Below are positions 6,387-61,508 of a stretch of 64,000 bases of DNA, piece by piece; within the stretch, counting starts at the first letter, position 1; every line of letters begins with the position of its first letter. The stretch is taken from sequence record OQ363659.1; one strand, written 5' to 3'. Below the pieces are notes generated by a model. The model made no database searches. It was given only the letters and a program-made list of their open reading frames with translations, and was not told the DNA's origin. A program made the position numbers and the translations under genes.

Positions 6387-6727
6387 TACATTCTCCCTAG
6401 ATAAGTGACGTGGTTACGACGCAGGTGGTCGCGCAGTTGACGATCAGTCATTGCACGAGGGCCAACGCGATCTTGCAGTTCTTCGGTACGATCGAGACGT
6501 GCACGCTTCGCACGAGTCATCTTGAGGTTCAACGAGAATTGTTCACCGCCCTGGAACTTCTCACGGTCATAAGACCAAGCAACCAACGAGTTGAACCCGT
6601 AGTGGTCAACGATACGACGCCCGTTGTGTGCACGACGGATACGCGGAATACCATTATCCTCTTTCTTGTAGAGGCCCTCTTTAGGATCACGGTAGTTGGG
6701 GTGTTTCTTACCAAACTTACGGCACAT
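6386..6727 (-). CDS. basic (Arg/Lys-rich) hypothetical protein
   Basis: 113 aa with many R/K; AAGGA RBS. Confidence 0.65.
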   Translation of the reverse strand: MCRKFGKKHPNYRDPKEGLYKKEDNGIPRIRRAHNGRRIVDHYGFNSLVAWSYDREKFQGGEQFSLNLKMTRAKRARLDRTEELQDRVGPRAMTDRQLRDHLRRNHVTYLGRM

Positions 6728-6736
6728 AGCTTTTCC

Positions 6737-6958
6737 TTAGAACGAGAGGATCTTGATTTGGTTGCGTTCGAACAGATCATTCCGGTTATGGTCATGATCG
6801 ATGTATTCGCCAGAACGCATGTGGCGGTAAACCCAAGAACCCAGGAATGGATTACCTGTAGGTGACACCCCGTATTCCTTTGCAACTACATGCATGTGCT
6901 CCGGAGAGATGTAGATGTTGTCCTGGATGCAATCCATCAATTCGATTTGTTGGGCCAT
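6737..6958 (-). CDS. hypothetical protein
   Basis: 73 aa; GAGGT RBS. Confidence 0.65.
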   Translation of the reverse strand: MAQQIELMDCIQDNIYISPEHMHVVAKEYGVSPTGNPFLGSWVYRHMRSGEYIDHDHNRNDLFERNQIKILSF

Positions 6959-7020
6959 GCTGCTTACCTCTAACGTAATGTAGATCTAAAATAAAATGGA
7001 GCTATTAGACAAATAAAAAA

Positions 7021-7040
7021 CCAGGGCTCGAAAGCCCTGG
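7021..7040 (-). terminator. rho-independent terminator
   Basis: CCAGGGCT-CGAA-AGCCCTGG (UUCG loop on the minus strand) followed by a U-tract. Confidence 0.8.
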
Positions 7041-7048
7041 GTATTACT

Positions 7049-7489
7049 TTACAGGTTGATCAGGGTTTCTAACGTAGTTCGTTCACTACGCAGCAGGCGA
7101 ATCATGTTCCAGTAGAAATTGGAAAGGACAATCCGACGTTCGAAATGTTCCGTGTAGAACGGCGAATTTATTACATCACGGTAATACGGATCATAACTGC
7201 CCAAGTACGACGAAATGAAGCCGGCTGCCGTACTATCGTAATTGAGGCACGACAAGATATGGTTAGTCGTGATGATGTGATCCGCCTTCGAAATCTCTCC
7301 GGCCTTACGTGCAGCATCGAGCGTATGACACATGTAAAGTCCCCGGTAGCGACCACTGACGATCATCTTCTCCAGGGTATTGGCGATACGATTGTTACGA
7401 GCTTGCTCCGCTTGCAGCAGAGCTTCTTCACGAGCGGCTTCGGATTGGAACAATGCGACCAACAGCTTTTTCATTTTGAATCCTTGCAA
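7049..7489 (-). CDS. hypothetical protein, paralog family A
   Basis: Shares EK..I.G.Y..MC and ERRIxLSNxYW motifs with 7532-7960. Confidence 0.7.
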   Translation of the reverse strand: MQGFKMKKLLVALFQSEAAREEALLQAEQARNNRIANTLEKMIVSGRYRGLYMCHTLDAARKAGEISKADHIITTNHILSCLNYDSTAAGFISSYLGSYDPYYRDVINSPFYTEHFERRIVLSNFYWNMIRLLRSERTTLETLINL

Positions 7490-11079: not shown

Positions 11080-11265
11080 TTAAAGGCAAGGAGCGGTGGT
11101 GGTATTGAGAGCGATTAGCAAGATCATAATGACCGGAGCCAACAGACCCATGATCCACCACAAACGTTTCTCACGTTGGGTAGCGTCACCAAATACTGCA
11201 AACACAGCGGCACCGAGCAATCCCATCATTGCTGCGATCATCCAACCTACTAATGCGGAAAGCAT
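11080..11265 (-). CDS. small two-TM membrane protein
   Basis: Start MLSALV at 11265 with an AAGGGGG RBS. Confidence 0.65.
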   Translation of the reverse strand: MLSALVGWMIAAMMGLLGAAVFAVFGDATQREKRLWWIMGLLAPVIMILLIALNTTTAPCL

Positions 11266-11266
11266 G

Positions 11267-11488
11267 TTACCCCCTTGAAACTCTACCACTTACTTGGTTC
11301 ACTTTCTGTGTACTGATCTTACCGCAACGCCCGCAACCCATGGTGTAAAGTTCATGGGTCACGTACTTGCCGTCATGATCAATCGAGATCATTGATCCAT
11401 CATAACGGCTACGGATTTCTTTGCAAGATAGCAGCTGATAGTTGTGCTGACAACCACCAACGAACAACCGCCAGAGTTCGTACAGCAT
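11267..11488 (-). CDS. small Zn-ribbon-like protein
   Basis: GCQHNY...GCGRCGKI. Confidence 0.6.
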   Translation of the reverse strand: MLYELWRLFVGGCQHNYQLLSCKEIRSRYDGSMISIDHDGKYVTHELYTMGCGRCGKISTQKVNQVSGRVSRG

Positions 11489-11793: not shown

Positions 11794-12291
11794 TTAAGCG
11801 TCTGCGTATTCGTGTTGGTCAGCGATAGCGGCTTCAACCGTGTTATCGCCTTGTGACAACCGGGTAGTCCAACCCAGTCGCTCGCGGATAACCAAAGCCA
11901 ACATGACTTTGCCTACCTGGCGAGGATCGAAGTATTCCGTTGCATGTCCAGTGAACGTATCACCGAACAGCGAGACGTAGCAGAATTCGGTGAGTTCACG
12001 AATACCGTGTTCACCACGATCTGCTTCTTGGGTGTGGATGAACCAGTACGACTTCGAGTTCTCGACCTGGAACTTCATCCCCACTTTGAACATCTGGATG
12101 CGGATGTAATACCACGCGGTGTCATCAGACACCAGTGCCGAGTCAGGAACCGCGAAACCTTCCTTCCATTCAGGATGGAACGCGTTCATGTAGTTCATGA
12201 ACGTTTCCAGCTTCAGCCGGTCCACATCCGATTTGATCCGGTTTGGTACTGCTACGAACAGTTTCAGTACCGAATGATCCAATACTAACAT
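11794..12291 (-). CDS. hypothetical protein
   Basis: 165 aa; AGGA RBS. Confidence 0.7.
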   Translation of the reverse strand: MLVLDHSVLKLFVAVPNRIKSDVDRLKLETFMNYMNAFHPEWKEGFAVPDSALVSDDTAWYYIRIQMFKVGMKFQVENSKSYWFIHTQEADRGEHGIRELTEFCYVSLFGDTFTGHATEYFDPRQVGKVMLALVIRERLGWTTRLSQGDNTVEAAIADQHEYADA

Positions 12292-12553
12292 CTTTCTTTC
12301 CTGTGTTGAACCATTCGCTAAGTACGATGGTTGTTCTAGTCTTATTGTTGACCGTCTTGTATTTCAGACGAATCACTTTCCAACCTGCCCGATGCAATGC
12401 AGTGAATACATCACGCAGATCTGATTCTTCGTAACGGCCTTCCAGTTTAACGTTGTAGCCTTGAGCGCCTTTCTCGACTAGTGGGTCATTCCCCATAGAG
12501 ACCCAATAGTTGTTCCCGTCAGGAAACAGAAGTTGCTGAGCGACTTGGTTCAT
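12170..12553 (-). CDS. hypothetical protein (3' end overlaps the next gene by 122 nt)
   Basis: Probable start MNQVAQ at 12553. Confidence 0.55.
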   Translation of the reverse strand: MNQVAQQLLFPDGNNYWVSMGNDPLVEKGAQGYNVKLEGRYEESDLRDVFTALHRAGWKVIRLKYKTVNNKTRTTIVLSEWFNTGKKDVSIGSFGTETVRSSTKPDQIGCGPAEAGNVHELHERVPS

Positions 12554-12697
12554 CAGTCGCTCATCACGCTTCCTTGCGCGACGAGAGAAGGTTATGCTAG
12601 GAGCGGGCAGCGAATGAAACAGGGGCATCCTTTACCTCGAACGAATAGGCCGAGCACGGCTTCTGAGGGTCCTTACAGAACTTCTCAGACACGTACC

Positions 12698-12784
12698 CTA
12701 CCGGTTGGTTACATCATAGAAAGCCTTCGCTACGCCCACGCTACAAGCGCAGACGAGCGAGAGGGCGAGTACTGCTTTACGCAT
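12698..12784 (-). CDS. 28-aa signal-peptide-like microprotein
   Basis: Hand-translated MRKAVLALSLVCACSVGVAKAFYDVTNR*; ATG adjacent to the upstream stop. Confidence 0.35.
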   Translation of the reverse strand: MRKAVLALSLVCACSVGVAKAFYDVTNR

Positions 12785-12785
12785 A

Positions 12786-13118
12786 TCAAATCCACCGTGT
12801 AGCGTGAGGGTATTCAGCACGAATACGTTTAGCGATGTAGCGATGATCTGGGAACGATGTAGACAAGTTCACCCACATGATGCGAGCTGGGCTATTGTGC
12901 ATCTGTTCCAACCACTGACTACGGTTTAGTTTGCCAGCTGCCAATCGATCATTGATTGACTGTCTAGCGGTTGACTTCATCCATTCATCCTTGAGACGGA
13001 CGATCTCTTTATCAATAGCGCGGTATGGCGCAGCTGCATGTGCCACAGCAACGAAGCCTGCTGCGATCACCACCTTCGTGGCAACGCGGCCAACGCAGTA
13101 GAGTGTGAAATTGTTCAT
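12786..13118 (-). CDS. hypothetical protein with N-terminal hydrophobic helix
   Basis: 110-aa ORF. Confidence 0.6.
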   Translation of the reverse strand: MNNFTLYCVGRVATKVVIAAGFVAVAHAAAPYRAIDKEIVRLKDEWMKSTARQSINDRLAAGKLNRSQWLEQMHNSPARIMWVNLSTSFPDHRYIAKRIRAEYPHATRWI

Positions 13119-13174
13119 GGTGTTGTCCCTAGCTTAAATAAAATTATTATCATGTAAAAAATAAAAAGGTGGAA

Positions 13175-13194
13175 GGGGAAGCTTTCGCCTCCCC
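13175..13194 (-). terminator. rho-independent terminator
   Basis: Minus-strand GGGGAGGC-GAAA-GCTTCCCC followed by a U-rich tract. Confidence 0.65.
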
Positions 13195-13203
13195 CGCCAG
13201 GCA

Positions 13204-13488
13204 TCAGTCAGGAATCGACTCGATGTAGATTTCGAAGTTCTTGCGCAGCTCGTCGAGCGAGTCCACGTAAGTAACCCGCTTCTCGAATTTGGCGAGAAGC
13301 TCACGCCCCTCGACTTTTACGTGTGCCTGGACAGTACCGACACGAGCTTTGTCTGCCCGGACACGATCCGTGATCGCATCCAGTTCCACGTACAGGTCTT
13401 CAACCTGATAGCGGTCCCACAGCCGTTGGCAAACAATGACACCACCGGCAACGATGCCGACTTTGAAAAGTGTTCCGAGCAGAGACAT
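13204..13488 (-). CDS. N-terminally anchored membrane microprotein
   Basis: LFKVGIVAGGVIV helix. Confidence 0.7.
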   Translation of the reverse strand: MSLLGTLFKVGIVAGGVIVCQRLWDRYQVEDLYVELDAITDRVRADKARVGTVQAHVKVEGRELLAKFEKRVTYVDSLDELRKNFEIYIESIPD

Positions 13489-13493
13489 ATCGG

Positions 13494-13679
13494 TTACTCC
13501 ATGACCGTTGGGTTTGGGCCATCAGTGGTTGGCGGGGTATCACCACCACCAGGGCCATTGACGACGTCGTCGGCGATTTCTGCGGCATCAGCAGAGATCT
13601 CGTCCCAGCTGCGACCGACTTGGAATGCTACGTAGCCCAGGGCAGCGATAGCGGTAATTTTCAGCATGGTCTTGAACAT
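13494..13679 (-). CDS. membrane microprotein with acidic/Pro-rich tail
   Basis: LKITAIAALGYVAF; AAGGA RBS. Confidence 0.7.
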   Translation of the reverse strand: MFKTMLKITAIAALGYVAFQVGRSWDEISADAAEIADDVVNGPGGGDTPPTTDGPNPTVME

Positions 13680-13732
13680 GGCTTGTTTCCTTCTATTGCT
13701 TCAGGGGTGACTCCCCGTAGGGAGCCGAGGGG

Positions 13733-13864
13733 TTACTTGGATTCTTTGCGCAGTTTCACAGTGGTGGCGATGTGAGAAGCGCAGGACTTGACAGTGGATG
13801 CAACCATCAGGCAGACAACGATCTTACCGAAAGGACCCATCTCTTTGAATGCTTGTGCGATCAT
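13733..13864 (-). CDS. 43-aa membrane microprotein (not in ORF track)
   Basis: Hand-translated MIAQAFKEMGPFGKIVVCLMVASTVKS...; GGAG RBS. Confidence 0.6.
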   Translation of the reverse strand: MIAQAFKEMGPFGKIVVCLMVASTVKSCASHIATTVKLRKESK

Positions 13865-13914
13865 GTTTGTTACTCCGTAAATTATGAATTAGGTTCTAGC
13901 GGGGAAGAAGCAGA

Positions 13915-14031
13915 TTACTTCTTCTCTTCCACTTTAGGATTTGGGCGAGCGGCTTCCGAGATCGATTTGACAACTTGCTCGATGCAGCCGAGAGCGATGG
14001 AAGCGAGGATGATTTTGCCGAAAGTATTCAT
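13915..14031 (-). CDS. 38-aa membrane microprotein (not in ORF track)
   Basis: Hand-translated MNTFGKIILASIALGCIEQVVKS...; AAGGA RBS; first gene after promoter P1. Confidence 0.65.
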   Translation of the reverse strand: MNTFGKIILASIALGCIEQVVKSISEAARPNPKVEEKK

Positions 14032-14055
14032 GACTAATTCCTTGTGATCAAGTGC

Positions 14056-14100
14056 GCTATATTCACGATTGTAATATAGCCTTTAAATGGTTTTAAATCA
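14056..14100 (-). promoter_or_regulatory. early (virion RNAP-type) promoter P1
   Basis: TGATT-N17-TATATTAC; TATATTAC is the known phiKZ early consensus; 8-bp inverted repeat around +1. Confidence 0.85.
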
Positions 14101-14298
14101 GGCTTCGTCGCGGACTGCTGCAACTACCGCAGTCAAACCAGCTGTTACGCAGACGATACCCGAGCCTAACAGGATGGTTACGTCACGGCGTTGGTGACGT
14201 TTACCGGCATTATCAACACCGGCCTTGAGCATGACACCTCCGAGACCGAGGGACACACCAGAGGCCATGCCTATTGCGATACGGTTCAGAAGTTTCAT
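14098..14298 (-). CDS. two-TM Gly-rich microprotein
   Basis: AIGMASGVSLGLGG and GSGIVCVTAGLTAVV. Confidence 0.7.
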   Translation of the reverse strand: MKLLNRIAIGMASGVSLGLGGVMLKAGVDNAGKRHQRRDVTILLGSGIVCVTAGLTAVVAAVRDEA

Positions 14299-14309
14299 AC
14301 AGCCTCCGG

Positions 14310-14513
14310 TTAGCCTTTGATGATTTCGACTACGTTCTTGACAGCAACAGCCGCACCGACTGCCGCAATGAACGAACCCACACCCATGTACAGGTGGCGT
14401 TCGGCATCAGACTTATCTTCTTTCATGTTAACAGCATGTTTGACGAAGTCCGAACCAACAGCGACGGTAGCACCAGCGCAGAGAGCAATACCAGCTTTGA
14501 AGAGAAGATTCAT
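14310..14513 (-). CDS. two-TM Gly/Ala-rich microprotein
   Basis: AGIALCAGATVAVG and GVGSFIAAVGAAVAV. Confidence 0.7.
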   Translation of the reverse strand: MNLLFKAGIALCAGATVAVGSDFVKHAVNMKEDKSDAERHLYMGVGSFIAAVGAAVAVKNVVEIIKG

Positions 14514-14543
14514 GATTATACCTACTTAATTTGGGGGAATGGA

Positions 14544-14864
14544 TTAACGAGTGGAAAGTATTTCTTGGGTGTTCGCTGACTGTTTCTTTTTAAACAGTCG
14601 CTTGTGCGCACGTATCGAATAGAACGTACCCATTGCACCACCTAAAGCAGATGGCACAAACACAACCCAGCCAGAGTGCAAGAACAACCCGAAGGTAGCG
14701 AAGATGGTTGTAGTTACCAGTACAGAAGTACCAGCCGCCACCCATTCACGACCTTGTGCAATATTGCGAGATTGGAAAGACTTAACAAATGCTTCAAAGA
14801 ACGTGACAACAAAAGCCAAGATGAATGGCGTAACGAGCACAACAATGTTGACAAACGAGCTCAT
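14544..14864 (-). CDS. multi-pass membrane protein
   Basis: Three to four hydrophobic segments, ending GGAMG...H-basic tail. Confidence 0.7.
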   Translation of the reverse strand: MSSFVNIVVLVTPFILAFVVTFFEAFVKSFQSRNIAQGREWVAAGTSVLVTTTIFATFGLFLHSGWVVFVPSALGGAMGTFYSIRAHKRLFKKKQSANTQEILSTR

Positions 14865-15046
14865 CGTACCACCAACATTTCTTGGCCATTAGGGCCGATG
14901 CGGTGACCGAGGATGGTTGGTTTCTTTTCAGCTTTGATTGCAGCGTATTCTTCATGATTGGTTTCGGCCATGGCAGTCAGATGCTGCATACCGAAAGAGC
15001 CTACAGCAACAGCAATCAGGAAGTAAACAGTCTGGAACTTGATCAT
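14861..15046 (-). CDS. membrane-anchored microprotein
   Basis: YFLIAVAVGSFGM; AAGGA RBS. Confidence 0.6.
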   Translation of the reverse strand: MIKFQTVYFLIAVAVGSFGMQHLTAMAETNHEEYAAIKAEKKPTILGHRIGPNGQEMLVVR

Positions 15047-15116
15047 GGTGAAATCCTTAACTTAATGTGATAGTGCTTTTGCAATATATCGATGCGGTAC
15101 ATTGCAGAAGAACTAT

Positions 15117-15134
15117 GGGGACCCGAAGGTCCCC
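15117..15134 (-). terminator. hairpin (terminator or processing site)
   Basis: GGGGACC-CGAA-GGTCCCC; weak U-tract. Confidence 0.6.
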
Positions 15135-15141
15135 TGTTCGA

Positions 15142-15390
15142 TTATTGCGGGTAGACTTTCAACTGGGCTTCGTTCAGTCGATTGACGAACATGTGACCCA
15201 GCGCTTCGCCGAGGGAATCGGCATGTTCCTGAGTAGCTTCCCCACGAGGACCGACATCATCGGTCTCGAATGGTTCACCACGCATGGCTGCTTCGTAGCG
15301 CTCGTTGTGCCTCAATACATCCAGACGCTTCTTGTTCTTTCTGGAGAGGAATGGATAACGACCGGTGAACGGAGTTTGGTCTTGGGACAT
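15142..15390 (-). CDS. hypothetical protein
   Basis: 82 aa, coupled. Confidence 0.65.
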   Translation of the reverse strand: MSQDQTPFTGRYPFLSRKNKKRLDVLRHNERYEAAMRGEPFETDDVGPRGEATQEHADSLGEALGHMFVNRLNEAQLKVYPQ

Positions 15391-15815
15391 CAGTTGATTG
15401 CCTTTTCAGTTGCCATGCGGACAACTTCCTCACGGAAGAAGTTGCGCTGTGCGTTGTTCTGGTGACAGTCGGAAACCTCACCGTCGACCATCAGTTCATC
15501 GACGTCGATACGCGCCACGTCGATTACGGTCTCACCGAAGATGGAGATGTTGAAGCGGTTGCAGATGTACTTCTGGACGGGATCATCCTTGAATGGAATG
15601 ACCACACGTGCGCTTTGTGACTTGTCCATGAAGACGTAGTTTACGTCGTAGATGGCTTCGTTTGCTTCCATGGTGCAAGTGATCTTGGAGATCTGGCGAC
15701 CATTAGCGATCCAGCTGCTCATTGGAGCTTTAGGACCGAAGGTGAATGCAGCGTGCATCACCTGGTGAGTCAGGTGGATGCGGAAGGAGTTCAGTTCAGC
15801 GTCGTTACGGTTCAT
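15390..15815 (-). CDS. hypothetical protein
   Basis: 141 aa; AAGGA RBS. Confidence 0.75.
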   Translation of the reverse strand: MNRNDAELNSFRIHLTHQVMHAAFTFGPKAPMSSWIANGRQISKITCTMEANEAIYDVNYVFMDKSQSARVVIPFKDDPVQKYICNRFNISIFGETVIDVARIDVDELMVDGEVSDCHQNNAQRNFFREEVVRMATEKAIN

Positions 15816-15847
15816 GCAGAAATTCCTTTTACTACTTAGATTGGGAT

Positions 15848-16024
15848 TTATTGTTTCGGGAGCAGCTTGGGTTGTGTCGGCTTAGTGGTAGCCGACACTT
15901 CCACGAGAGACTTCTGGCTCAGGCTATGCAGGTAGCCTTCCCGAACGCTGCGGTAAATTCTGTGGCCGATTACGCCAACGACGGCTACACCGGCTACAAT
16001 ACCGACAGTTTTCAGAGTGCTCAT
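15848..16024 (-). CDS. 58-aa membrane microprotein (not in ORF track)
   Basis: Hand-translated MSTLKTVGIVAGVAVVGVIGHRIYRS...; TAAGGA RBS. Confidence 0.65.
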   Translation of the reverse strand: MSTLKTVGIVAGVAVVGVIGHRIYRSVREGYLHSLSQKSLVEVSATTKPTQPKLLPKQ

Positions 16025-16034
16025 GTTCTTTTCC

Positions 16035-16316
16035 TTAGAGGCCGTTGGAGGCCATTTTGATTTGCTTGAGAAGTTCGCGGTGAAACTCTTCGCGATGGGA
16101 ATCGACGGTAATCGAAGTACCGGCGAAGAATGCCCAGCCAGCCAGATCTGCTTCCAGCTCGACAGCGGTTGGCGGGAACTCGAAGTGGGTCAGAGCAGTT
16201 TTGATCTGCCCTGGGATTTCACGCATCAGGTCATTACGACGCAGGCGGGATTCGTTCCAGAAGCAGGCGCCGCAAGCAGCGATAATGCCAACAGCACCGA
16301 GGATTACGTTACGCAT
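16035..16316 (-). CDS. N-terminally anchored membrane microprotein
   Basis: VILGAVGIIAACGAC; AAGGAG RBS; first gene after P2. Confidence 0.75.
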   Translation of the reverse strand: MRNVILGAVGIIAACGACFWNESRLRRNDLMREIPGQIKTALTHFEFPPTAVELEADLAGWAFFAGTSITVDSHREEFHRELLKQIKMASNGL

Positions 16317-16341
16317 GGTGGAACTCCTTAAAGTGGATTAA

Positions 16342-16380
16342 TTCACGATTGTAATATAGCGGTTTAAAAAGATGGAATCA
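16342..16380 (-). promoter_or_regulatory. early promoter P2
   Basis: TGATT-N17-TATATTAC-AATCGTGAAT. Confidence 0.85.
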
Positions 16381-16716
16381 ACCCAGGTCTACCAGGCGAT
16401 TGATATGTTGCTTGACTTGCTCGATCCCATGAGGTGGGAACGATGCACGGCTGATCTCACGACCATCTACCGAAGTCACTACCTGGAACCCTTGCAGGTC
16501 ACGGTAGAACACCTCGACGGTGTCTTCGTCTTTTCCGTACTCACCGACCATGTAGGCGGTACCGAGGATGTACGTGTAGCGGAAGTTGACGATCGTGCCT
16601 TCGTGCTGGGTGACGTAGAACACACGCTCGTCTTTCTTGTACTTGGTCGGGTCCCAGATGTGGGTGGGATTGGTGATGTAATCGATGAACAGATCGAGTT
16701 CGTTTTTGTTGGCCAT
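16378..16716 (-). CDS. hypothetical protein
   Basis: 112 aa; AAGGAG RBS. Confidence 0.75.
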   Translation of the reverse strand: MANKNELDLFIDYITNPTHIWDPTKYKKDERVFYVTQHEGTIVNFRYTYILGTAYMVGEYGKDEDTVEVFYRDLQGFQVVTSVDGREISRASFPPHGIEQVKQHINRLVDLG

Positions 16717-16748
16717 GCTTTACTCCTTAGGTTATCTTAATGTCACGG

Positions 16749-16780
16749 CATAAAGGCTTCCCTGCTGGGAAGCGCTTATG
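16749..16780. terminator. CATA/TATG-flanked hairpin
   Basis: GCTTCCC-TGCT-GGGAAGC flanked by CATA and TTATG. Confidence 0.6.
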
Positions 16781-16788
16781 GCGTATCA

Positions 16789-17316
16789 CTATTTGTTACT
16801 CAACCATGGCGGGTATACGACTACCATGGTGTTAGGAATCTTCTGTGAGGCTTCCTCGATCATCTCTGAGACGATATCGAAGTCTAACCCACCATTACCA
16901 CATCCAAGCGGTGGAACAATGATCTTCCAGGCTGGACTGATTTGGTCTTCTTCATTACCGATGTTATCTACGAGCCATTGTAAACCTTCGGCCACGTATT
17001 CATAGGTGGAAGGATTCTTCCAATTCTCCTTGGTCGGTAGCATCAGGTATCGCTTACCATCAGTACCTTCATAGAGCGCACAATGACCGATCGTAATCGA
17101 TTTCATTTTGCAGTCATGTTTGTATTTGAGGAATAGATCAGGATGACGCTCTGCGAATGCTTTAGCTACGCCAGCACCCATCACACCAATCGTGTTAACA
17201 GTTACGATGTAAAGATCTCCTGGTTCTCTGAAGATGTCTTTACCAATAATGAATTCAGCCATTGAACCGGCTCCCATGAAATTGTCTAATGGAGGGACCG
17301 ACATGATCCCTCTCAT
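16789..17316 (-). CDS. DarG/TARG1-type macrodomain (ADP-ribosyl hydrolase)
   Basis: VNTIGVMGAGVA, LPTK.NW and PPLGCGNGGL motifs; exact start uncertain. Confidence 0.85.
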   Translation of the reverse strand: MRGIMSVPPLDNFMGAGSMAEFIIGKDIFREPGDLYIVTVNTIGVMGAGVAKAFAERHPDLFLKYKHDCKMKSITIGHCALYEGTDGKRYLMLPTKENWKNPSTYEYVAEGLQWLVDNIGNEEDQISPAWKIIVPPLGCGNGGLDFDIVSEMIEEASQKIPNTMVVVYPPWLSNK

Positions 17317-17329
17317 TAGATTGAGTTGA

Positions 17330-17500
17330 TTATTTTTTCAACTCAGATTGCAATTTCAGGGAGGCGATTACCATGCCCAGAACTACGGTAACACAGCTAC
17401 CAGCGGCAGCCATATACTTCAACCGTGCCGTCTGACGATCGATGTCTTTGGTGGACATGGCGGTCTTTGGGTCGTCGGAGAAGATGCCTTTGAATTTCAT
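17330..17500 (-). CDS. 56-aa microprotein with C-terminal TM (not in ORF track)
   Basis: Hand-translated MKFKGIFSDDPK...AAAGSCVTVVLGMVIASL...; ATGA overlap with the upstream stop. Confidence 0.6.
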   Translation of the reverse strand: MKFKGIFSDDPKTAMSTKDIDRQTARLKYMAAAGSCVTVVLGMVIASLKLQSELKK

Positions 17501-17886
17501 GCGATTGCCTTATTCTTTTCACGGAGTTCATTGAGTTTTGCCATTGCCGGACCAGCACCGATTTGCTTGTCCATGCTCAGCGCACCAGTCATGCCTTTGA
17601 TGCGAAGGTTGTGCTGGCGGCACAGGTCCAGAACACTGCGTTGTTCTTTCCAGACCATGTCGCGTATTTGCTTATCGGTCATGTAGACCGAGATGAACAT
17701 CATGGAACACATGGCTTTGAAGCCAACGGCCTGGATGCCATCGATCCACTTTTTCGCTTTCTTACGAATGCGGTCATTCTTGGAGCTGGTTGCGATCTGC
17801 ACCAACTTCATGCCACGACGCTCGATGTAGACTTCCAGGTCTTTCTTGGTCTTTTCGATCAGTTGCTTGCGAGTTTGGAACTTCAT
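17497..17886 (-). CDS. basic hypothetical protein
   Basis: 129 aa. Confidence 0.7.
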   Translation of the reverse strand: MKFQTRKQLIEKTKKDLEVYIERRGMKLVQIATSSKNDRIRKKAKKWIDGIQAVGFKAMCSMMFISVYMTDKQIRDMVWKEQRSVLDLCRQHNLRIKGMTGALSMDKQIGAGPAMAKLNELREKNKAIA

Positions 17887-17965
17887 AGTTTTTTACCCCA
17901 AAAAGAAATCAGCTTTTGATTGAATGCCCAAGGGTCCACGATCAATCGATCATGAACCCCAGCGC

Positions 17966-18088
17966 TCAGCGGCGCTGTTTAGTTTTCTGCTCGTGAGCAA
18001 CGATGGCCTTAACGGCGTAGTGAGACGCTACGCCAATGGCAGTAGCGATGGCGATGCGTTTTGCTACGTCGATCAGATGACCTTTCAT
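17966..18088 (-). CDS. 40-aa microprotein, paralog family B
   Basis: Start MKGHLID with a GGAG RBS; IAIATAIGVASHYAVKA. Confidence 0.6.
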   Translation of the reverse strand: MKGHLIDVAKRIAIATAIGVASHYAVKAIVAHEQKTKQRR

Positions 18089-18110
18089 TTTAAGCTCCCG
18101 AGCAGATGGG

Positions 18111-18281
18111 TTAGTTGGACTTGGCCAGGACGGTGGCGACACCAGCGACGCACAGGGTGACGATTGCACCACTGACAGCGATCTGGGTCATGTCACGTTT
18201 TTCAGCTTTTGCTTCATCAACCAGAGCTTTAGCGTGTGCCAGGCCGAGGATACTGAGTGCAGCGAGTTTGATGATTGGCAT
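18111..18281 (-). CDS. 56-aa hydrophobic microprotein (not in ORF track)
   Basis: Hand-translated MPIIKLAALSILGLAHAK...IAVSGAIVTLCVAGVATVLAKSN*; GGAG RBS; first gene after P3. Confidence 0.65.
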   Translation of the reverse strand: MPIIKLAALSILGLAHAKALVDEAKAEKRDMTQIAVSGAIVTLCVAGVATVLAKSN

Positions 18282-18311
18282 GATTGAATCTCCGTAGCGT
18301 GGGGTGTGTTA

Positions 18312-18351
18312 TATCACGGTTGTAATATAGCGGTTAAATCGTTTTAAATCA
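18312..18351 (-). promoter_or_regulatory. early promoter P3
   Basis: TGATT-N17-TATATTAC. Confidence 0.85.
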
Positions 18352-18726
18352 AGCAGTACGTTCTACCACGCTGATGTTGGTGACATCAACGTAGTTGGAA
18401 ACTGGGATGGTGTTGCGGTAGAAGCGGAGTTGGTGACTGTATTCAGCGCGCTTGTCACGTGGAGCTTCTTCCAGCTTCACATCGCGACGAGCGAATGCTT
18501 TACGGTACAGCGGAATCAGACGGAACTCGAAGCTCAGCGAAACTTGTTCAACTTTGGTGATGCGATCTGGACGGAAGAACCCAGGCAGGTCCTGACCGAT
18601 GATGTCCAAGATATTATCGACCTCACGTTCAATGCGAGCCATTTCCATGCTGCGGGACTGCTGGACGTGTTTGCGGATGATCAGCAGTGCGACAACGATG
18701 AAGCCGATAACGAGAACAGTGTTCAT
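18349..18726 (-). CDS. N-terminally anchored membrane protein
   Basis: VLVIGFIVVALLII; AAGGA RBS. Confidence 0.75.
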   Translation of the reverse strand: MNTVLVIGFIVVALLIIRKHVQQSRSMEMARIEREVDNILDIIGQDLPGFFRPDRITKVEQVSLSFEFRLIPLYRKAFARRDVKLEEAPRDKRAEYSHQLRFYRNTIPVSNYVDVTNISVVERTA

Positions 18727-18775
18727 TTGATATCCTTAATTCAAATCTTAGATTGGGTGTAGCGAGAGTATAGCG

Positions 18776-18892
18776 TTACTTAGCTTTCTTTGCAACCTGA
18801 GCATCGATCACTTTGATCGCGGCTTTGGTGGTGTAGTGTGCCGTGACACCGATTACGATTGCTTTGGTCAGGGCGATGGCGAACTCTTTCAT
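18776..18892 (-). CDS. 38-aa microprotein, paralog family B (not in ORF track)
   Basis: Hand-translated MKEFAIALTKAIVIGVTAHYTTKAAIKV...; AAGGAG RBS. Confidence 0.65.
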   Translation of the reverse strand: MKEFAIALTKAIVIGVTAHYTTKAAIKVIDAQVAKKAK

Positions 18893-18902
18893 GTGGAACT
18901 CC

Positions 18903-19070
18903 TTACTTTAGGGATTGTTGACGAGCTTTGTCTTCTTTGGCACGCTGTTTGGCGTGACGTTTGGCAGCGTACTGTACGCAGAAGCAGCGCTTGCCGATTT
19001 CGTTCAGAGCCAGGAAACCCAGCCCCAGAACAGCGGCAGTCTTAGCTGCCCAAATCATTTCATCTTTCAT
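18903..19070 (-). CDS. membrane-anchored microprotein
   Basis: Start MKDEMIW overlapping the upstream TGA; AAVLGLGFLAL. Confidence 0.6.
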   Translation of the reverse strand: MKDEMIWAAKTAAVLGLGFLALNEIGKRCFCVQYAAKRHAKQRAKEDKARQQSLK

Positions 19071-19273
19071 TTCTGATTCAACCATGCTGTAGTGATGACG
19101 AAAGAACCGGCAGCCAGAACTACACCACCCAGGAGGTTCTTCTTGTGAGCCGACAGCTTGACGCCATCAACGCTTACTTCAGTCTTCGGATTCATGATCC
19201 GTGCAGCGGCACCGAGAGTAGCACCACCCAGAGTAGCACCACCCAGAGCCAGAGTAGCGATGTAATTCAGCAT
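19067..19273 (-). CDS. glycine-zipper two-TM microprotein
   Basis: LALGGATLGGATLGAA, containing a 15-nt tandem duplication; AAGGAG RBS; first gene after P4. Confidence 0.7.
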   Translation of the reverse strand: MLNYIATLALGGATLGGATLGAAARIMNPKTEVSVDGVKLSAHKKNLLGGVVLAAGSFVITTAWLNQK

Positions 19274-19301
19274 GAGAACACTCCTTAGCGTAGTTATTAC
19301 A

Positions 19302-19348
19302 GGGCCATATTCACGATTGTAATATAGCCCTATAAATGTTTTAAATCA
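19302..19348 (-). promoter_or_regulatory. early promoter P4
   Basis: TGATT-N17-TATATTAC; 10-bp inverted repeat with one mismatch. Confidence 0.85.
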
Positions 19349-19663
19349 TACTTCAGCGAGTATGATGAGATGGCGATTAACAGAATACATCTGTTGCAGC
19401 CACATCTGAGTGCGTTCTGCACTGAACGTGGCACGCATGTAACGGCGCTCAATTCGCTTGTGGAGGTTGTGGAGTTCATCCAGAGCTTCCATCCGTGTGA
19501 TCGTCTTTTTGTTCTGACGGTCTCGGATCTTCTCGAACTCGGTTGTGTATTCTTCCACACAACGGCAACACTCGGTAACACGCATACCAAGCTTTGCCAT
19601 GCCCCATACAAACACAGTGGTCAAACCAACGGTTGCAAGAACAGCACTATTGTCCGTACTCAT
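19346..19663 (-). CDS. N-terminally anchored helical protein, family C
   Basis: TM followed by ITRMEA motif; AAGGAG RBS. Confidence 0.7.
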   Translation of the reverse strand: MSTDNSAVLATVGLTTVFVWGMAKLGMRVTECCRCVEEYTTEFEKIRDRQNKKTITRMEALDELHNLHKRIERRYMRATFSAERTQMWLQQMYSVNRHLIILAEV

Positions 19664-19694
19664 GGTAGAACTCCTTCGCCTCTAGGCGAGTAGG

Positions 19695-19859
19695 TTAGAA
19701 ACCGTGGACCCAGACGGTCATAACCAGGAGCACTCCGAAGAGGGCTCCCAGTCGGCGAGGCGTGATCCACAACAGATCTTGTTGGACGGGCGGAGGCTCT
19801 TGGCCCTCTGCCATTTTGCGATAACGTTCGTTTACAGCATCGTCGATTTGGTGATTCAC
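19695..19859 (-). CDS. 54-aa microprotein with C-terminal TM (not in ORF track)
   Basis: GTG start overlapping the upstream TGA, GGAGG RBS; ...LGALFGVLLVMTVWVHGF*. Confidence 0.6.
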   Translation of the reverse strand: MNHQIDDAVNERYRKMAEGQEPPPVQQDLLWITPRRLGALFGVLLVMTVWVHGF

Positions 19860-20176
19860 TTTACATCCTCCAGCAATTTCTTACGACCTACTCGGCAACG
19901 CTCGAAGAACTCTTCAGCGTCTTTTCTTTCCTCCAGGGTTACGTGGAGGTAAGCGAGCTTGTAACGATCGATGATCAGATCGATCTTGGTTTCCGCTTCC
20001 GAGCGAGTCATATGACCGTGCTTGCAATTGAACTCATTTACATCCAGTTCAACTTCCATGTTCTTCAAGGCCAAGATAGCCTTGCTGGTGCGAATGCTGA
20101 TGCGGGCGACCGATGCTACACCAATAGCAGCAGCAACACCTACGATCGAGAGCAGAGCTTTAGAGCCGAAGTCCAT
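19856..20176 (-). CDS. N-terminally anchored helical protein, family C
   Basis: LLSIVGVAAAIGVASV followed by MTRSEA motif; first gene after P5. Confidence 0.75.
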   Translation of the reverse strand: MDFGSKALLSIVGVAAAIGVASVARISIRTSKAILALKNMEVELDVNEFNCKHGHMTRSEAETKIDLIIDRYKLAYLHVTLEERKDAEEFFERCRVGRKKLLEDVK

Positions 20177-20201
20177 AATTGTGTCCTTTTAATTGCGTAG
20201 A

Positions 20202-20240
20202 TTCACGTTCGTAATATAGGCCTTTAATCAGTTTAAATCA
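20202..20240 (-). promoter_or_regulatory. early promoter P5
   Basis: TGATT-N17-TATATTAC. Confidence 0.85.
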
Positions 20241-20621
20241 AGTGCCAAACACGAATCCTTCGATATCACCTGTATCCGTGGTGATCGTAGTAACGCTTTT
20301 AATAGGGGATTGGATCTGGGCTAGTGCCGGTGAGATGATACGGAACAGATTATCGAGGTAATAGAAGAAATGGTTAAACCCTGGGGTGTAGCACTCGAAG
20401 TGTTCACGTAAGCTGTTGATGAATGCATTGTATTGCAGATTGTCTTTGCTGATATAGAACTGGTGCCGTGCTAACAAGAAAGCAGCAGTCTTGGTATAAA
20501 CATCGTTAACCAACCGCATGTCAATATTCATGGATTCTTTTAGGCTACCGATGAGGTTATAAGACCATACTTGTTCTACACGGATGAAATGGTTGATGCC
20601 CTGCATGAGATTACCTGTCAT
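20238..20621 (-). CDS. hypothetical protein, last gene of the structural operon
   Basis: Start MTGNLM at 20621 with a GGAGGG RBS. Confidence 0.7.
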   Translation of the reverse strand: MTGNLMQGINHFIRVEQVWSYNLIGSLKESMNIDMRLVNDVYTKTAAFLLARHQFYISKDNLQYNAFINSLREHFECYTPGFNHFFYYLDNLFRIISPALAQIQSPIKSVTTITTDTGDIEGFVFGT

Positions 20622-20649
20622 AGTCCCTCCCGTTGGGGAGGGACGTATG

Positions 20650-22047
20650 TTAATTTGTACGAGGTGCATCTGGGTCTACAATGACCGGATCACCTTCTTT
20701 ACGGTTAATGAATACACCCAGTGTTACGATACCTACGTGTGAAGTGACTTCAACGTTGGAATCTCCTTGGGCTCTAGATTCGTCTACACCTAATAACACT
20801 CCGTTGTAAGTTTCTACCGAGTTGTCACTAGCGGTCATGAACTTAACGGGCATACCAGGGAACAACAGATCTGAATCCCCATGGAACCACTGAAGCTTTA
20901 AGAACATCCCACGTCGACGAGCCATCTCCGAGTAATGCTTGAATGGGTTAGAGGTAGCGCGATCGTAAGCCCACCGTACGTTGTTGAACCCAGACTCTAG
21001 CAAACCAGTAGACACTTCGAACAGGTTAGATGCCCGATCGATTAACGTCCGGTTATCCTTAGCCGTACCGAAGTCCCCTAGGAGCTTCGTAACGTCGCCA
21101 AAGCGTAAACCGTTACCCTGTTTAAGGTTATCGGCTAAACCGTTGTCTAGGGCGCTTGCATCGCCTGTAGCGAGCACTGTTACGTGCTGCTCATCCACTT
21201 TGTAAGTACGCTCTGCACCTTGGTACCGATCGTTAGGAACGTTGATCAGTTTTAGTACCTTCATGTTCTTCTTGTAACGAGTTGAGTCGTACAGTGGATA
21301 CACGTACCAATACTGATCTTGCAGATAACGTCCAAAGCCTGTAGGGTAAACCCCACCTTCCTCTTCGTGGATGTAATGGGGCACGTCTTTCAACATGATC
21401 CCATCAGGGAAATCCATAACCGTACGGATCTCAGTGTTGTAACCATCGAGGAAGTTGATACCTAAGACACGCTTAGCGTCTTGAGTACCTACGTCGCCCA
21501 TTGTGGAAGCCAGCACTTCTTGGATAGCCTGCATCGGTTGACACTGCCGTAGGGAATTACCATACGACATCATGTTAACCCGGAATGCTGCTTCATCGAT
21601 GAGCTGAACTGCAACCGAGATCATCCCGAGTTGGTTCAACGATTCACGTGAGCTCGTTTGAGAGTCTTTGTTCGTAACCGCATTGTTGAACTGAGTCATT
21701 AATACTGCACGATACCGTTTAACCTCAGACTTACGAGACGTATCCATTGCATTCGAGTTGTACTTGAGTGGAACGTACACGACTTCGCATTGGAGGTTAT
21801 CCCGATTGGGAACAACGTCGTATTGGAAATCGCCTTGGTTCATCAAGAACTGAATCATCCGTCTATCAGAGAACTGTTCCTTAGAGGCATAGTCTCGTGT
21901 GAGGGATTCGTACTCAACCTTGAAGGGTTTGATCCACATCGTTTCTTTTGCGATAAGCTGGCAGTCAATCCGCCAACCCGAGTTACCTTCGCCGTTGTCA
22001 CGGATGTCATCAACCTCTCGCATTAACAGCGTATTGTCAATGGCCAT
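20650..22047 (-). CDS. virion (probably tail/baseplate) protein, phiKZ gp101-like
   Basis: 465 aa; synteny with the phiKZ gp101-gp84 block. Confidence 0.65.
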   Translation of the reverse strand: MAIDNTLLMREVDDIRDNGEGNSGWRIDCQLIAKETMWIKPFKVEYESLTRDYASKEQFSDRRMIQFLMNQGDFQYDVVPNRDNLQCEVVYVPLKYNSNAMDTSRKSEVKRYRAVLMTQFNNAVTNKDSQTSSRESLNQLGMISVAVQLIDEAAFRVNMMSYGNSLRQCQPMQAIQEVLASTMGDVGTQDAKRVLGINFLDGYNTEIRTVMDFPDGIMLKDVPHYIHEEEGGVYPTGFGRYLQDQYWYVYPLYDSTRYKKNMKVLKLINVPNDRYQGAERTYKVDEQHVTVLATGDASALDNGLADNLKQGNGLRFGDVTKLLGDFGTAKDNRTLIDRASNLFEVSTGLLESGFNNVRWAYDRATSNPFKHYSEMARRRGMFLKLQWFHGDSDLLFPGMPVKFMTASDNSVETYNGVLLGVDESRAQGDSNVEVTSHVGIVTLGVFINRKEGDPVIVDPDAPRTN

Positions 22048-60315: not shown

Positions 60316-60573
60316 TCAGTACTTACCCTGCTGCAATTGGATCTCGACGATCTCATCTTGCAACCGGTCACGAATCTTGTTGATCTCGTACATGCAGATC
60401 GACATGGTTGTGATTGTGGTTAAGATGCCAACCCACAATGCAATCATGATCTTACCCCGATGCATCACGAACCACTTGTTGTCATTCTGGGACTTGTACA
60501 GCAGTGCTCCCAGTGCGACTGGAACTATGCCAAGCATCAGCACCAGGATGAGTGCACTTATGTTTAAAAGCAT
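60316..60573 (-). CDS. two-TM membrane protein
   Basis: Hydrophobic segments. Confidence 0.7.
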   Translation of the reverse strand: MLLNISALILVLMLGIVPVALGALLYKSQNDNKWFVMHRGKIMIALWVGILTTITTMSICMYEINKIRDRLQDEIVEIQLQQGKY

Positions 60574-60845
60574 TACAGGGACTCCACGAGGCTATGCATG
60601 GTAATAGAAATATAAGCAGAGCCAAAGCCCCAGATCAGCAGCATGCCTGCGATGCTACCAATCATAATCTTCAAGCCGAGCATGAAAGTTTTCTTCTCCC
60701 ATGCTCGGGCATCTTTAACTGCCTGACTGGACTCTTCAGTTACAGGATAACTGAGACACATCATCATCAGTAACATCAGTACCGAAGAGCTGATGAGCCC
60801 ACCCAAGCATATTACATACAGCGTTAACATGAGATGATAGAGCAT
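60573..60845 (-). CDS. two-TM membrane protein
   Basis: Hydrophobic segments, coupled. Confidence 0.7.
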   Translation of the reverse strand: MLYHLMLTLYVICLGGLISSSVLMLLMMMCLSYPVTEESSQAVKDARAWEKKTFMLGLKIMIGSIAGMLLIWGFGSAYISITMHSLVESL

Positions 60846-61088
60846 TTACATTATCCGATAGCACATTAAAGTGGATCGCAAGAAACACAGCGTCGGTATT
60901 GAGATGAACATTAATGTTAATCCCAACATCATACCGATGTAAGTCATTGCGATAGTTTCGTAGTAGCGACTACTGGTGTCATATACACGGACGTGCATAA
61001 TGAACATTACTAACAATGCCAGCTCAATGAGCAACAGCGTACCGCCCATACCGAAGAAGTATCTAACTACTGATAGGTGTGGTTCCAC
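60846..61088 (-). CDS. two-TM membrane protein
   Basis: GTG start with an AAGGAG RBS. Confidence 0.7.
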   Translation of the reverse strand: MEPHLSVVRYFFGMGGTLLLIELALLVMFIMHVRVYDTSSRYYETIAMTYIGMMLGLTLMFISIPTLCFLRSTLMCYRIM

Positions 61089-61305
61089 AGTTTAACTCCT
61101 TTTGCACAGGTGGCTTTTCAGGCCATTGGGTTGGTGGGAATAGTTCAGAGATTACCATCCATTGTCCTAAGCCCATTAGTATCATGGTAAGGAACATAGC
61201 TAGGAAGCCGTACTCGTTAAACTTCTTCGACATTTTACCATTCAGGTAATTCAGCATCAATATCGATGTGAAGACAACGATTACTAGACCTACAGCAATT
61301 TTCAT
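61063..61305 (-). CDS. two-TM membrane protein
   Basis: Start MKIAVG at 61305 with a TAAGGA RBS. Confidence 0.7.
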   Translation of the reverse strand: MKIAVGLVIVVFTSILMLNYLNGKMSKKFNEYGFLAMFLTMILMGLGQWMVISELFPPTQWPEKPPVQKELNCGTTPISS

Positions 61306-61313
61306 GGGTATCC

Positions 61314-61490
61314 TTAGGTAATCTTGGTGATGATCAGGAGAACACAGTAGCCAGCCAGTAATACACACAGGCCGCCACCAAACAAACGTACGGTAACACC
61401 ACATGCTGATTTAGCCGATGCAGCACTAAAGAACAGCACGAGGCCAAGACCGAACGTAATGATAATCGGAGCTAGCAATACAATCCACAT
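61314..61490 (-). CDS. 58-aa two-TM microprotein (not in ORF track)
   Basis: Hand-translated MWIVLLAPIIITFGLGLVLFF...; TAAGGA RBS; first gene after P6. Confidence 0.65.
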   Translation of the reverse strand: MWIVLLAPIIITFGLGLVLFFSAASAKSACGVTVRLFGGGLCVLLAGYCVLLIITKIT

Positions 61491-61508
61491 GATCGTATCC
61501 TTAAATGA

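Follow-up and report, generated by a model that had tools for sequence, protein, structure and literature searches.

Small membrane-type genes behind early-promoter-like repeats form a conserved, fast-evolving array in the phiKZ-like Pseudomonas phage D6

The closest described counterparts of the locus treated here, a block of small genes at positions 13204-20176 of a 64,000-nucleotide stretch (the window) of Pseudomonas phage D6 (OQ363659.1), are the left arm of phage phiKZ and the host-takeover module of phage SPO1. The phiKZ left arm (orf1-orf20/23) is expressed very early and highly and is non-essential (10.1101/2024.03.24.586471; 10.1101/2025.11.23.690004). Its orf1-20 lie within a long run of genes found to be non-essential by transposon sequencing, and the authors of that study speculate that anti-defence loci may be among them (10.1101/2025.11.23.690004). 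The SPO1 module is a cluster of some 26 early genes, most of them small, with several strong promoters and ribosome-binding sites; the genes target host processes, and each of them can be dispensed with under laboratory conditions (PMC6873191). We read the D6 block as an early-transcribed accessory island directed at the host envelope by a nucleus-forming jumbo phage, a reading to which we give a probability of about 0.6. Phage T4 also makes small early proteins, Imm, Sp and rI, which are located in the inner membrane or face the periplasm, serve superinfection exclusion and lysis inhibition, and are not needed when a cell is infected only once; their genes are scattered, unlike the D6 array, and the D6 proteins have no sequence or Pfam match to them. 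Bacterial small membrane proteins of the YohP and MgrB type resemble D6 members in having fewer than about 70 amino acids, one transmembrane (TM) helix and a charged tail, and they bind larger membrane proteins (PMC12648545; 10.1101/2022.12.22.521624), but they are host-encoded, stress-regulated and without homology to the D6 members.

In position, and partly in content, the D6 block appears from sequence comparison to correspond to the early dispensable left arm of phiKZ. Both are sets of same-strand small genes that stand beside structural genes and behind early promoters, putative in D6, of the virion RNA polymerase. Three array genes reach phiKZ-type phages: 14861-15046 is homologous to phiKZ gp010.1 (88% identity over the C-terminal 17-mer), 16378-16716 to gp018, and a holin-like gene has its counterpart in phage KTN4 (KTN4_024). 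The two regions differ in that TM-like genes number only 8 of 29 in the phiKZ-type block but about 16-20 of 25 in D6, and in that most D6 membrane families are without a phiKZ counterpart; conversely, tblastn with 27 D6 proteins, those of the array and of one gene flanking it on either side, gave no counterpart of the ribosome-binding gp14 of phiKZ. The architecture may be called analogous to that of the SPO1 module, as 25 genes in 7 kb are served by five promoter copies and 21 of the 25 have Shine-Dalgarno (SD)-like sites. The D6-type array also varies among relatives, and dispensability is known for the partly homologous phiKZ region (10.1101/2025.11.23.690004). SPO1, however, is an unrelated phage of an unrelated host, without sequence similarity to the block, and it uses early promoters of the host RNA polymerase, and those of its products that have been characterised are mostly soluble; the membrane bias and the paralogue families of D6 are not described features of SPO1. 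Early arrays of small accessory genes are already known, and what is new here is the strong, conserved specialisation on membrane microproteins together with clade-specific paralogue families.

The block is identical (100%) to the D6 record of 307,402 bp, base 1 of the window being record base 186001, and D6 infects P. syringae pv. tomato DC3000. The phage belongs to the phiKZ-like, nucleus-forming (Chimalliviridae-type) jumbo phages because it encodes a homologue of chimallin (ChmA, phiKZ gp54; 43% identical over 576 amino acids), has an annotated PhuZ tubulin and carries homologues of the phiKZ lysis cassette; a preliminary description made from the DNA letters had assigned it correctly to this group. 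Multi-subunit RNA polymerase genes are also annotated. The chimallin homologue, at about 267.0-268.7 kb of the record, bears merely the label 'hypothetical protein' in GenBank. The nearest sequenced relatives are Psa21 (genus Tepukevirus) and RVTF4, to which only 8-9% of the block could be matched at the nucleotide level (9% for Psa21, at about 78% nucleotide identity).

The block contains 25 open reading frames (ORFs) of 38-157 amino acids, arranged head to tail on the minus strand with gaps of 0-95 nucleotides or short overlaps. This agrees with the rough number of 25 proposed previously, although the array reaches one gene further left, to 12786-13118. GenBank annotates 24 of the 25, all of them as 'hypothetical' except one macro-domain protein. 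Since the ORFs are very short and mostly without database relatives, and since hydrophobic stretches easily arise by chance, many of them might be annotation noise in an intergenic-rich early region rather than functional genes. This explanation is excluded. The codon-usage score is positive in all 25 (0.15-0.60 bits per codon, against -0.21 for alternative frames), and just 1 of 52 alternative-frame ORFs reaches the lowest score of a gene. An SD-like tetramer lies at -18 to -4 of 21 of the 25 starts but of only 7% of other same-strand ATGs, which bears out the good ribosome-binding sites noticed earlier; two of the four starts that lack one overlap an upstream stop codon. The ratio of nonsynonymous to synonymous substitution rates (dN/dS) was estimated against L017, a 305-kb metagenomic contig that is the closest relative found, Psa21 being judged too diverged for this purpose. 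Wherever an orthologue allowed a measurement, the ratio is 0.05-0.43; for two pairs dS was not computable. Positional orthologues in five genomes also keep the TM character. Codon usage, SD-like sites, dN/dS and orthologues in five genomes thus identify the ORFs as genuine genes under purifying selection. The adjacent structural genes have dN/dS values of 0.02-0.04 against the same contig, so that array members evolve several-fold faster than their neighbours.

The 54-amino-acid, GTG-started ORF 19695-19859 is the only one of the 25 that is unannotated in GenBank. It is a missed gene, because it is present in all five relatives, has a dN/dS of 0.12 and possesses a strong SD site; its product is 53-79% identical where this was measured (Psa21, RVTF4, L017).

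Most products of the array are of membrane type. With a Kyte-Doolittle test (mean of at least 1.6 in a 19-residue window), 16 of the 25 ORFs are strictly TM-like and four more are borderline (1.27-1.49), giving about 20 in total, close to the 19 or so counted in the preliminary description. Five products are clearly soluble (15142-15390, 15390-15815, 16378-16716, 16789-17262 and 17497-17886). The same test is passed by 5 of 52 alternative-frame ORFs in the block and by 7 of 58 genes elsewhere in the window (Fisher p=8e-6). In seven pieces of the record, each scanned separately and not joined, 34 small TM-like genes were counted for D6; the block (7.5 kb, 2.4% of the genome) holds 16 of them.

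The helices had been described as rich in glycine and alanine, with emphasis on GxxxG and AxxxG. Enrichment is present but modest, Gly+Ala making up 27% of the block's TM segments and 21% of other D6 TM segments (p=0.015). The emphasis on the motifs had to be dropped: small-xxx-small patterns occur 27 times, against 29.8 in per-segment shuffles, a frequency no higher than composition predicts, and they were rejected as a defining feature. The basic tails, by contrast with the motifs, proved systematic: in single-pass members 0-1 Lys/Arg precede the helix and 2-4 follow it, and in the two-helix hairpin members the charge sits in the loop. Because these distributions obey the positive-inside rule, the single-pass members are predicted to lie N-out/C-in and the hairpins with their loop in the cytoplasm.

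The genes are listed below in the order of transcription, with the basis of each description; dN/dS values refer to L017. The last entry lies outside the block as first delimited.

19856-20176, minus: 106 amino acids; N-terminal TM anchor (about residues 8-26) and a C-terminal domain of about 80 amino acids, predicted cytoplasmic; paralogue of 19346-19663; dN/dS 0.16
19695-19859, minus: 54 amino acids; GTG start overlapping the upstream stop; C-terminal TM of tail-anchor type; in all five relatives; dN/dS 0.12
19346-19663, minus: 105 amino acids; N-terminal TM anchor and soluble domain; dN/dS 0.10
19067-19273, minus: 68 amino acids; two-helix hairpin family with Gly/Ala-rich helix 1, charged loop and TM helix 2; hydropathy and profiles
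18903-19070, minus: 55 amino acids; one hydrophobic helix, C-tail very basic; orthologue lacking in L017, Psa21 and RVTF4; hydropathy
18776-18892, minus: 38 amino acids; weakly hydrophobic helix and basic tail; paralogue of 17966-18088 (16 bits); dN/dS 0.27
18349-18726, minus: 125 amino acids; N-anchored, with a TM-plus-stalk helix (2-46) and a small alpha/beta domain (about 57-112); AlphaFold2 (AF2) model with a predicted local distance difference test score (pLDDT) of 77
18111-18281, minus: 56 amino acids; hairpin family; hydropathy and profiles
17966-18088, minus: 40 amino acids; weakly hydrophobic helix and basic tail; annotated ATG start; dN/dS 0.09
17497-17886, minus: 129 amino acids; soluble and very basic (net +16), not membrane; hydropathy
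17330-17500, minus: 56 amino acids; C-terminal TM; beside the macro-domain gene in all relatives; dN/dS 0.07
16789-17262, minus: 157 amino acids; stand-alone DarG-type macrodomain; family and structure-database matches
16378-16716, minus: 112 amino acids; soluble homologue of phiKZ gp018; PHROG without function, tblastn
16035-16316, minus: 93 amino acids; N-terminal TM anchor and soluble domain; dN/dS 0.33
15848-16024, minus: 58 amino acids; N-terminal TM with a basic juxtamembrane stretch; hydropathy
15390-15815, minus: 141 amino acids; soluble; hydropathy
15142-15390, minus: 82 amino acids; soluble; a lipobox protein of similar size stands in this part of the array in RVTF4 and L014; hydropathy
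14861-15046, minus: 61 amino acids; signal-peptide-like N-terminus (by eye) and conserved C-terminal 17-mer; phrog_15989, homologue of phiKZ gp010.1
14544-14864, minus: 106 amino acids; multi-TM, holin-like; phrog_7045 'holin'
14310-14513, minus: 67 amino acids; hairpin family; hydropathy and profiles
14098-14298, minus: 66 amino acids; hairpin family; AF2 helix-loop-helix of low confidence
13915-14031, minus: 38 amino acids; single-pass, tandem paralogue of 13733-13864; profiles, up to 30 bits
13733-13864, minus: 43 amino acids; single-pass with basic C-tail; dN/dS 0.19
13494-13679, minus: 61 amino acids; N-terminal hydrophobic segment and acidic Pro/Gly/Thr-rich tail; dN/dS 0.06
13204-13488, minus: 94 amino acids; N-terminal TM anchor and soluble domain; D6/Psa21/RVTF4 clade only; dN/dS 0.14
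12786-13118, minus: 110 amino acids; N-anchored, of the same class, conserved in relatives; dN/dS 0.20

The island thus consists of about 20 small membrane proteins (including the signal-peptide-like and the multi-TM, holin-like member), four soluble proteins and a DarG-type macrodomain. The membrane-type members fall into a few architectures, which are named here by their first coordinate: four two-helix hairpins (14098, 14310, 18111, 19067); short single helices with a basic tail (13733, 13915, 15848, 17966, 18776, 18903); N-terminal anchors followed by a domain of 60-100 amino acids (13204, 16035, 18349, 19346, 19856 and, outside the block, 12786); and two C-terminally anchored proteins (17330, 19695). 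The singletons are 13494 with its acidic tail, the signal-peptide-like 14861 and the multi-TM, holin-like 14544. All 25 proteins were searched against Pfam, PHROGs, NCBIfam and PADLOC. The only informative matches were the macrodomain, one 'holin' PHROG and PHROGs without function for 14861-15046 and 16378-16716; weak Pfam matches to NICE-3, DUF2157, Polysacc_synt and SfLAP were treated as noise from hydrophobic composition.

Five intergenic gaps in the block each hold one copy of a 51-nucleotide repeat, the sole substantial DNA repeat family present:

20196-20246, minus: early-promoter-like repeat P5, core 20211-20218; precedes 19856-20176, 19695-19859 and 19346-19663
19304-19354, minus: early-promoter-like repeat P4, core 19319-19326; motif comparison
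18307-18357, minus: early-promoter-like repeat P3, core 18322-18329; motif comparison
16336-16386, minus: early-promoter-like repeat P2, core 16351-16358; motif comparison
14056-14106, minus: early-promoter-like repeat P1, core 14071-14078; motif comparison

The copies share an invariant 8-nucleotide core that is identical to the phiKZ early core, and on either side of it the A/T blocks upstream and the bases that follow agree with the longer early motif of 201phi2-1 (PMC7058600 Table 2). Exact cores occur eight times in the window against 0.9 expected, and a 17-nucleotide pattern seven times against 0.08 expected. Both the core and the extended upstream elements (around -20 and -30) of a phiKZ-type early promoter, as used by the virion RNA polymerase, are therefore found in the sequence. 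In 201phi2-1 the motif is conserved at -10, -20 and -30, transcription starts about 10 bp downstream of it, and all the genes that it precedes are hypothetical (PMC11512511); for phiKZ, 32 early promoters of this type have been described, and ONT-cappable-seq detected 18 of them (10.1101/2023.10.13.562163). With a weight matrix derived from the five D6 copies, and so biased towards them, 14 sites of at least 18 bits were found in the D6 genome, about 13 of them convincing and all on the minus strand, and none in shuffled sequence. Of the five early promoters postulated before, the motif identity stands for all five 51-nucleotide copies, while early activity in D6 is deduced from the motif and from homology to the phiKZ left arm. 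The block is thus probably transcribed early. All five copies stand at the head of short operons and are directly followed by a membrane microprotein gene, as are 17 of 19 motif copies in the arrays of relatives.

Two terminator-like structures were seen, and Rfam gave no family at gathering score in 12000-21000:

15117-15134, minus: terminator-like GC hairpin between 15142-15390 and 14861-15046, from a scan
13156-13194, minus: terminator-like hairpin with T-run just after 13204-13488, read by eye from the sequence; the scan did not call it

The array is syntenic in five relatives, where it lies between the same virion-structural genes and an HD-domain gene:

Psa21: 15 of 23 genes TM-like, five motif copies
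RVTF4: 14 of 21 genes TM-like, three motif copies
L014 (a 315-kb ENA contig): 18 of 30 genes TM-like, four motif copies
L016 (a more distant Logan contig): 6 of 16 genes TM-like, two motif copies
L017 (the closest relative): gene order compared, outside the TM and motif counts

Within this conserved frame genes have been gained, lost and relocated between close relatives. The microproteins are 24-68% identical to their counterparts in Psa21 and RVTF4, and the macrodomain and holin-like proteins 78-85%. The 94-amino-acid protein of 13204-13488 was found only in D6, Psa21 and RVTF4 among 50,697 phage records. Lipobox-bearing small proteins (LTGC or LAGC) occur in the arrays of RVTF4 (8106-8354 of L003) and L014. 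The L014 array also encodes a protein with a signal peptide and a glycine zipper, the L014 genes concerned being 7209-7472 and 6634-7044; these envelope-exported members are not present in the D6 array.

Profiles of the orthologue groups were searched against 20-fold composition-matched decoys, the best of which scored 13 bits. The members have increased in number by local duplication, and at least four paralogue families emerged: the hairpins (15-17 bits between groups), 13733 with 13915 (up to 30 bits), 17966 with 18776 (16 bits) and 19346 with 19856 (20 bits). As the only DNA repeat family is the promoter itself, this paralogy is old and visible at the profile level only, and a recent segmental duplication at the DNA level was rejected. 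The AF2 model of the hairpin 14098-14298, of low confidence (pLDDT 61), has helices at 3-29 and 39-65 joined by a loop; helix 1 of the family is weakly hydrophobic and Gly/Ala-rich and helix 2 is stronger. A 15-nucleotide in-frame tandem at 19198-19246, in ORF 19067-19273, repeats a five-residue Gly/Ala/Thr/Leu unit in helix 1 and is a small-scale example of expansion of a hairpin helix. The family is confined to the clade: 10 matches came from a word-indexed search of 5.8 billion proteins and 13 from an exhaustive HMMER search of 1.84 billion representatives, among which a repetitive protein of 5,271 amino acids was spurious. The search for wider homologues therefore yielded the same clade and that one spurious protein.

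This pattern of inheritance bears on a role in the early phage infection (EPI) vesicle, to which the preliminary description had linked the genes. The microproteins might be constituents or remodellers of the vesicle that stabilise it, export mRNA or hand the genome to the nascent nucleus. D6 encodes chimallin, and phages of this group begin infection in a lipid vesicle (10.1101/2023.09.20.558163; 10.1101/2024.03.24.586471); the genes have early-type promoters, and the tails and domains are mostly predicted on the cytoplasmic face, which would be the outer face of the vesicle. The restriction of most families to one small clade and their gain and loss between close relatives, however, fit a conserved core function of an organelle poorly, and phiKZ does not require its homologous region (10.1101/2025.11.23.690004). 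A link to the making of the vesicle is weakened further by its formation in gentamicin-arrested cells, before any phage protein is made; since no new protein synthesis is needed, such a role is disfavoured (10.1101/2024.03.24.586471). The non-virion early proteins that co-purify with the injected gp93 are gp14, 16, 22, 38, 216, 238 and 280, not small membrane proteins (10.1101/2024.03.24.586471), a point that is tempered by the under-detection of tiny hydrophobic proteins in mass spectrometry. Taken together, we regard a vesicle role as distinctly unlikely, although the proteins may join the vesicle at a later stage.

The most likely alternative to vesicle-building machinery, and the form in which we hold the envelope-directed reading, is that the island is a dispensable kit for takeover of the host envelope or for counter-defence. 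The packaged RNA polymerase would transcribe its units in the first minutes after injection, and host ribosomes would translate the microproteins, which would insert into the host inner membrane. In that membrane the single-pass members would take the N-out/C-in orientation, so that their tails or small domains face the cytoplasm, and the loop of the hairpins would be cytoplasmic. They would then bind and modulate host envelope or membrane-embedded proteins, and possible effects include a block to secondary infection, neutralisation of membrane-based abortive-infection or defence effectors and tuning of membrane energetics. The benefit would be conditional and lie outside the core replication cycle.

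Several observations weigh against this reading. No member belongs to a known exclusion, anti-defence, toxin or holin-regulator family in Pfam, PHROGs, NCBIfam or PADLOC, and in particular superinfection-exclusion families (T4 Imm/Sp, Cor/Llp-type lipoproteins) were unmatched by the 25 proteins in Pfam, NCBIfam and PHROG; membrane remodelling, exclusion or anti-defence activity was assigned to no member by any analysis. The sole modelled soluble domain, that of 18349-18726, is without an informative fold match: its AF2 model had no significant match in PDB, and in BFVD it matched only the Psa21 orthologue and an uncharacterised Noxifer protein. The TM calls come from a hydropathy scale and the positive-inside rule rather than from a trained predictor, and the four borderline members could be amphipathic instead of membrane-spanning. 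The early timing in D6 is read from the motif. Finally, early-motif units elsewhere in D6 mostly encode non-membrane proteins. The proposition that all early genes encode membrane proteins was rejected on this ground; for the same reason early timing alone fails to explain the membrane bias, which is a property of the island and not a general trait of early genes.

A bolder form of the envelope-directed reading is that the duplicating clade-specific families (the hairpins, the single-pass proteins of about 40 amino acids and the N-anchored small domains) constitute a novel class of factors for counter-defence or exclusion. Their site of action would be the host inner membrane or the cytoplasmic side of the early vesicle, and their targets would be membrane-embedded sensors or effectors that act on jumbo phages before the nucleus is formed. 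We consider this speculative and, as it stands, unlikely; if it were true, the rapid turnover of the array would reflect an arms race at the membrane.

The same size and shape allow a more destructive interpretation, in which the microproteins shut off the host by depolarising or permeabilising its inner membrane early and, like type I toxins, stop host metabolism. A single hydrophobic helix with a charged tail recalls small membrane toxins and stress peptides (PMC12648545; 10.1101/2025.05.06.652344), and early expression from several promoters resembles that of the partly cytotoxic SPO1 takeover genes (PMC6873191). Yet the 60-min latent period given in PMC11139720 would require an energised membrane for most of the cycle, and twenty different depolarisers would be redundant. 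No toxin family was matched in Pfam or NCBIfam, including peptides of the Hok, TisB, Ldr and Ibs type, nor was an antisense or regulatory RNA found by Rfam in 12000-21000. We therefore think this explanation highly improbable.

The 'holin' label of 14544-14864 raises the question of lysis. A module of holin, antiholin and lysis-inhibition proteins might set or delay permeabilisation, like rI and rIII of T4. The gene matches phrog_7045, its relatives are annotated likewise, and by eye its layout resembles that of class I holins, which have three TM domains, lie N-out and C-in and end in basic residues; two of its hydrophobic segments pass the hydropathy threshold, a third is read by eye, and its C-tail is basic. 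A resemblance to class II holins and pinholins is seen in the two-helix hairpins, which share a weakly hydrophobic, Gly/Ala-rich helix 1 and a stronger helix 2; the pinholin layout, however, is the opposite of that of the D6 hairpins, whose loop is cytoplasmic by the positive-inside rule. phiKZ itself may possess a lysis-inhibition system (PMC12894885). The proven phiKZ holin, on the other hand, is the single-TM gp142 of the gp141-144 cassette (PMC12894885), and the D6 homologues of gp141, gp141.1, gp143 and gp144 lie at 155.8-158.3 kb of the record, 43 kb away and outside the window. Because this canonical phiKZ-type cassette lies elsewhere, the label is doubtful and 14544-14864 was rejected as the lysis holin of D6. 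The phrog_7045 label is its sole support, no Pfam holin family being matched, and the gene stands neither in a lysis cassette nor behind a late-type motif, the units of the block having early-type motifs. According to annotation and Pfam, the block has no endolysin, spanin or other lysis gene. The holin-like gene occupies a different slot of the array in L017 (6469-6762), and no match to it was found when the first 14.5 kb of the phiKZ reference were searched, although in KTN4, of the same species, it is present in that region. A few members may have a role in lysis timing, which we hold very unlikely for the array as a whole. In the D6 cassette, a 110-amino-acid gene occupies the position of gp142, and the endolysin homologue is labelled 'tail fiber protein' in GenBank.

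The macrodomain encoded by 16789-17262 is of DarG type (NCBIfam NF048014, 1.6e-40; PADLOC DarG, 1e-39; PDB 5m3i and 5m31, 5e-26 and 2e-23; Pfam Macro, 2.9e-10). As it consists of the macrodomain only, in 157 amino acids, and searches with Pfam, NCBIfam and PADLOC revealed no DarT-like neighbour, it is a stand-alone phage macrodomain and not the antitoxin of a toxin-antitoxin pair. It is a plausible candidate for an ADP-ribosyl glycohydrolase-like counter-defence enzyme, which could reverse DarT-type ADP-ribosylation of phage DNA, and its presence fits the counter-defence flavour of the island. The protein is 78-90% conserved in all relatives, and an upstream in-frame ATG would extend it from the annotated 157 to 175 amino acids. 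The nearby basic protein of 17497-17886, which may bind nucleic acid, has an orthologue in L017 (54% identity) and no counterpart in the Psa21 and RVTF4 arrays.

As had been suspected, no description of the microproteins was found in the searchable literature. The D6 genome paper passes over this region and is silent on promoters, membrane proteins and holins; none of the terms 'membrane protein', 'small protein', 'microprotein', 'holin', 'superinfection exclusion' and 'hydrophobic' appears in a jumbo-phage review of 2026; and the phiKZ-related transcriptome and antisense-knockdown papers leave the genes of the block untreated. Attention to nucleus-forming jumbo phages has so far gone nearly entirely to the protein shell, injected proteins and soluble early factors, while D6 devotes 5 of its approximately 13 early promoters, a large share, to a set of membrane microproteins. 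If these act on envelope defence, on secondary infection or on the early vesicle, the membrane would be a new front in jumbo-phage biology. The island is a compact, delimited list of candidates, including one peptide conserved to phiKZ (gp010.1). Even if its genes are merely accessory, the annotation becomes cleaner by a missed gene, a doubtful 'holin', a located lysis cassette and a DarG-like candidate.

Genes for two-TM microproteins also lie elsewhere in the window. A copy of the early motif at 61518-61534 heads three two-TM microproteins of 58, 90 and 85 amino acids (60316-61534, minus), an exception among the early-motif units outside the block; these proteins are Leu/Ile-rich, and no kinship of this mini-cluster at 60.3-61.5 kb with the array families was found. 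Downstream of the array, and in the same transcriptional direction, lies an isolated ORF for a two-TM protein of 69 amino acids (11080-11289, minus).

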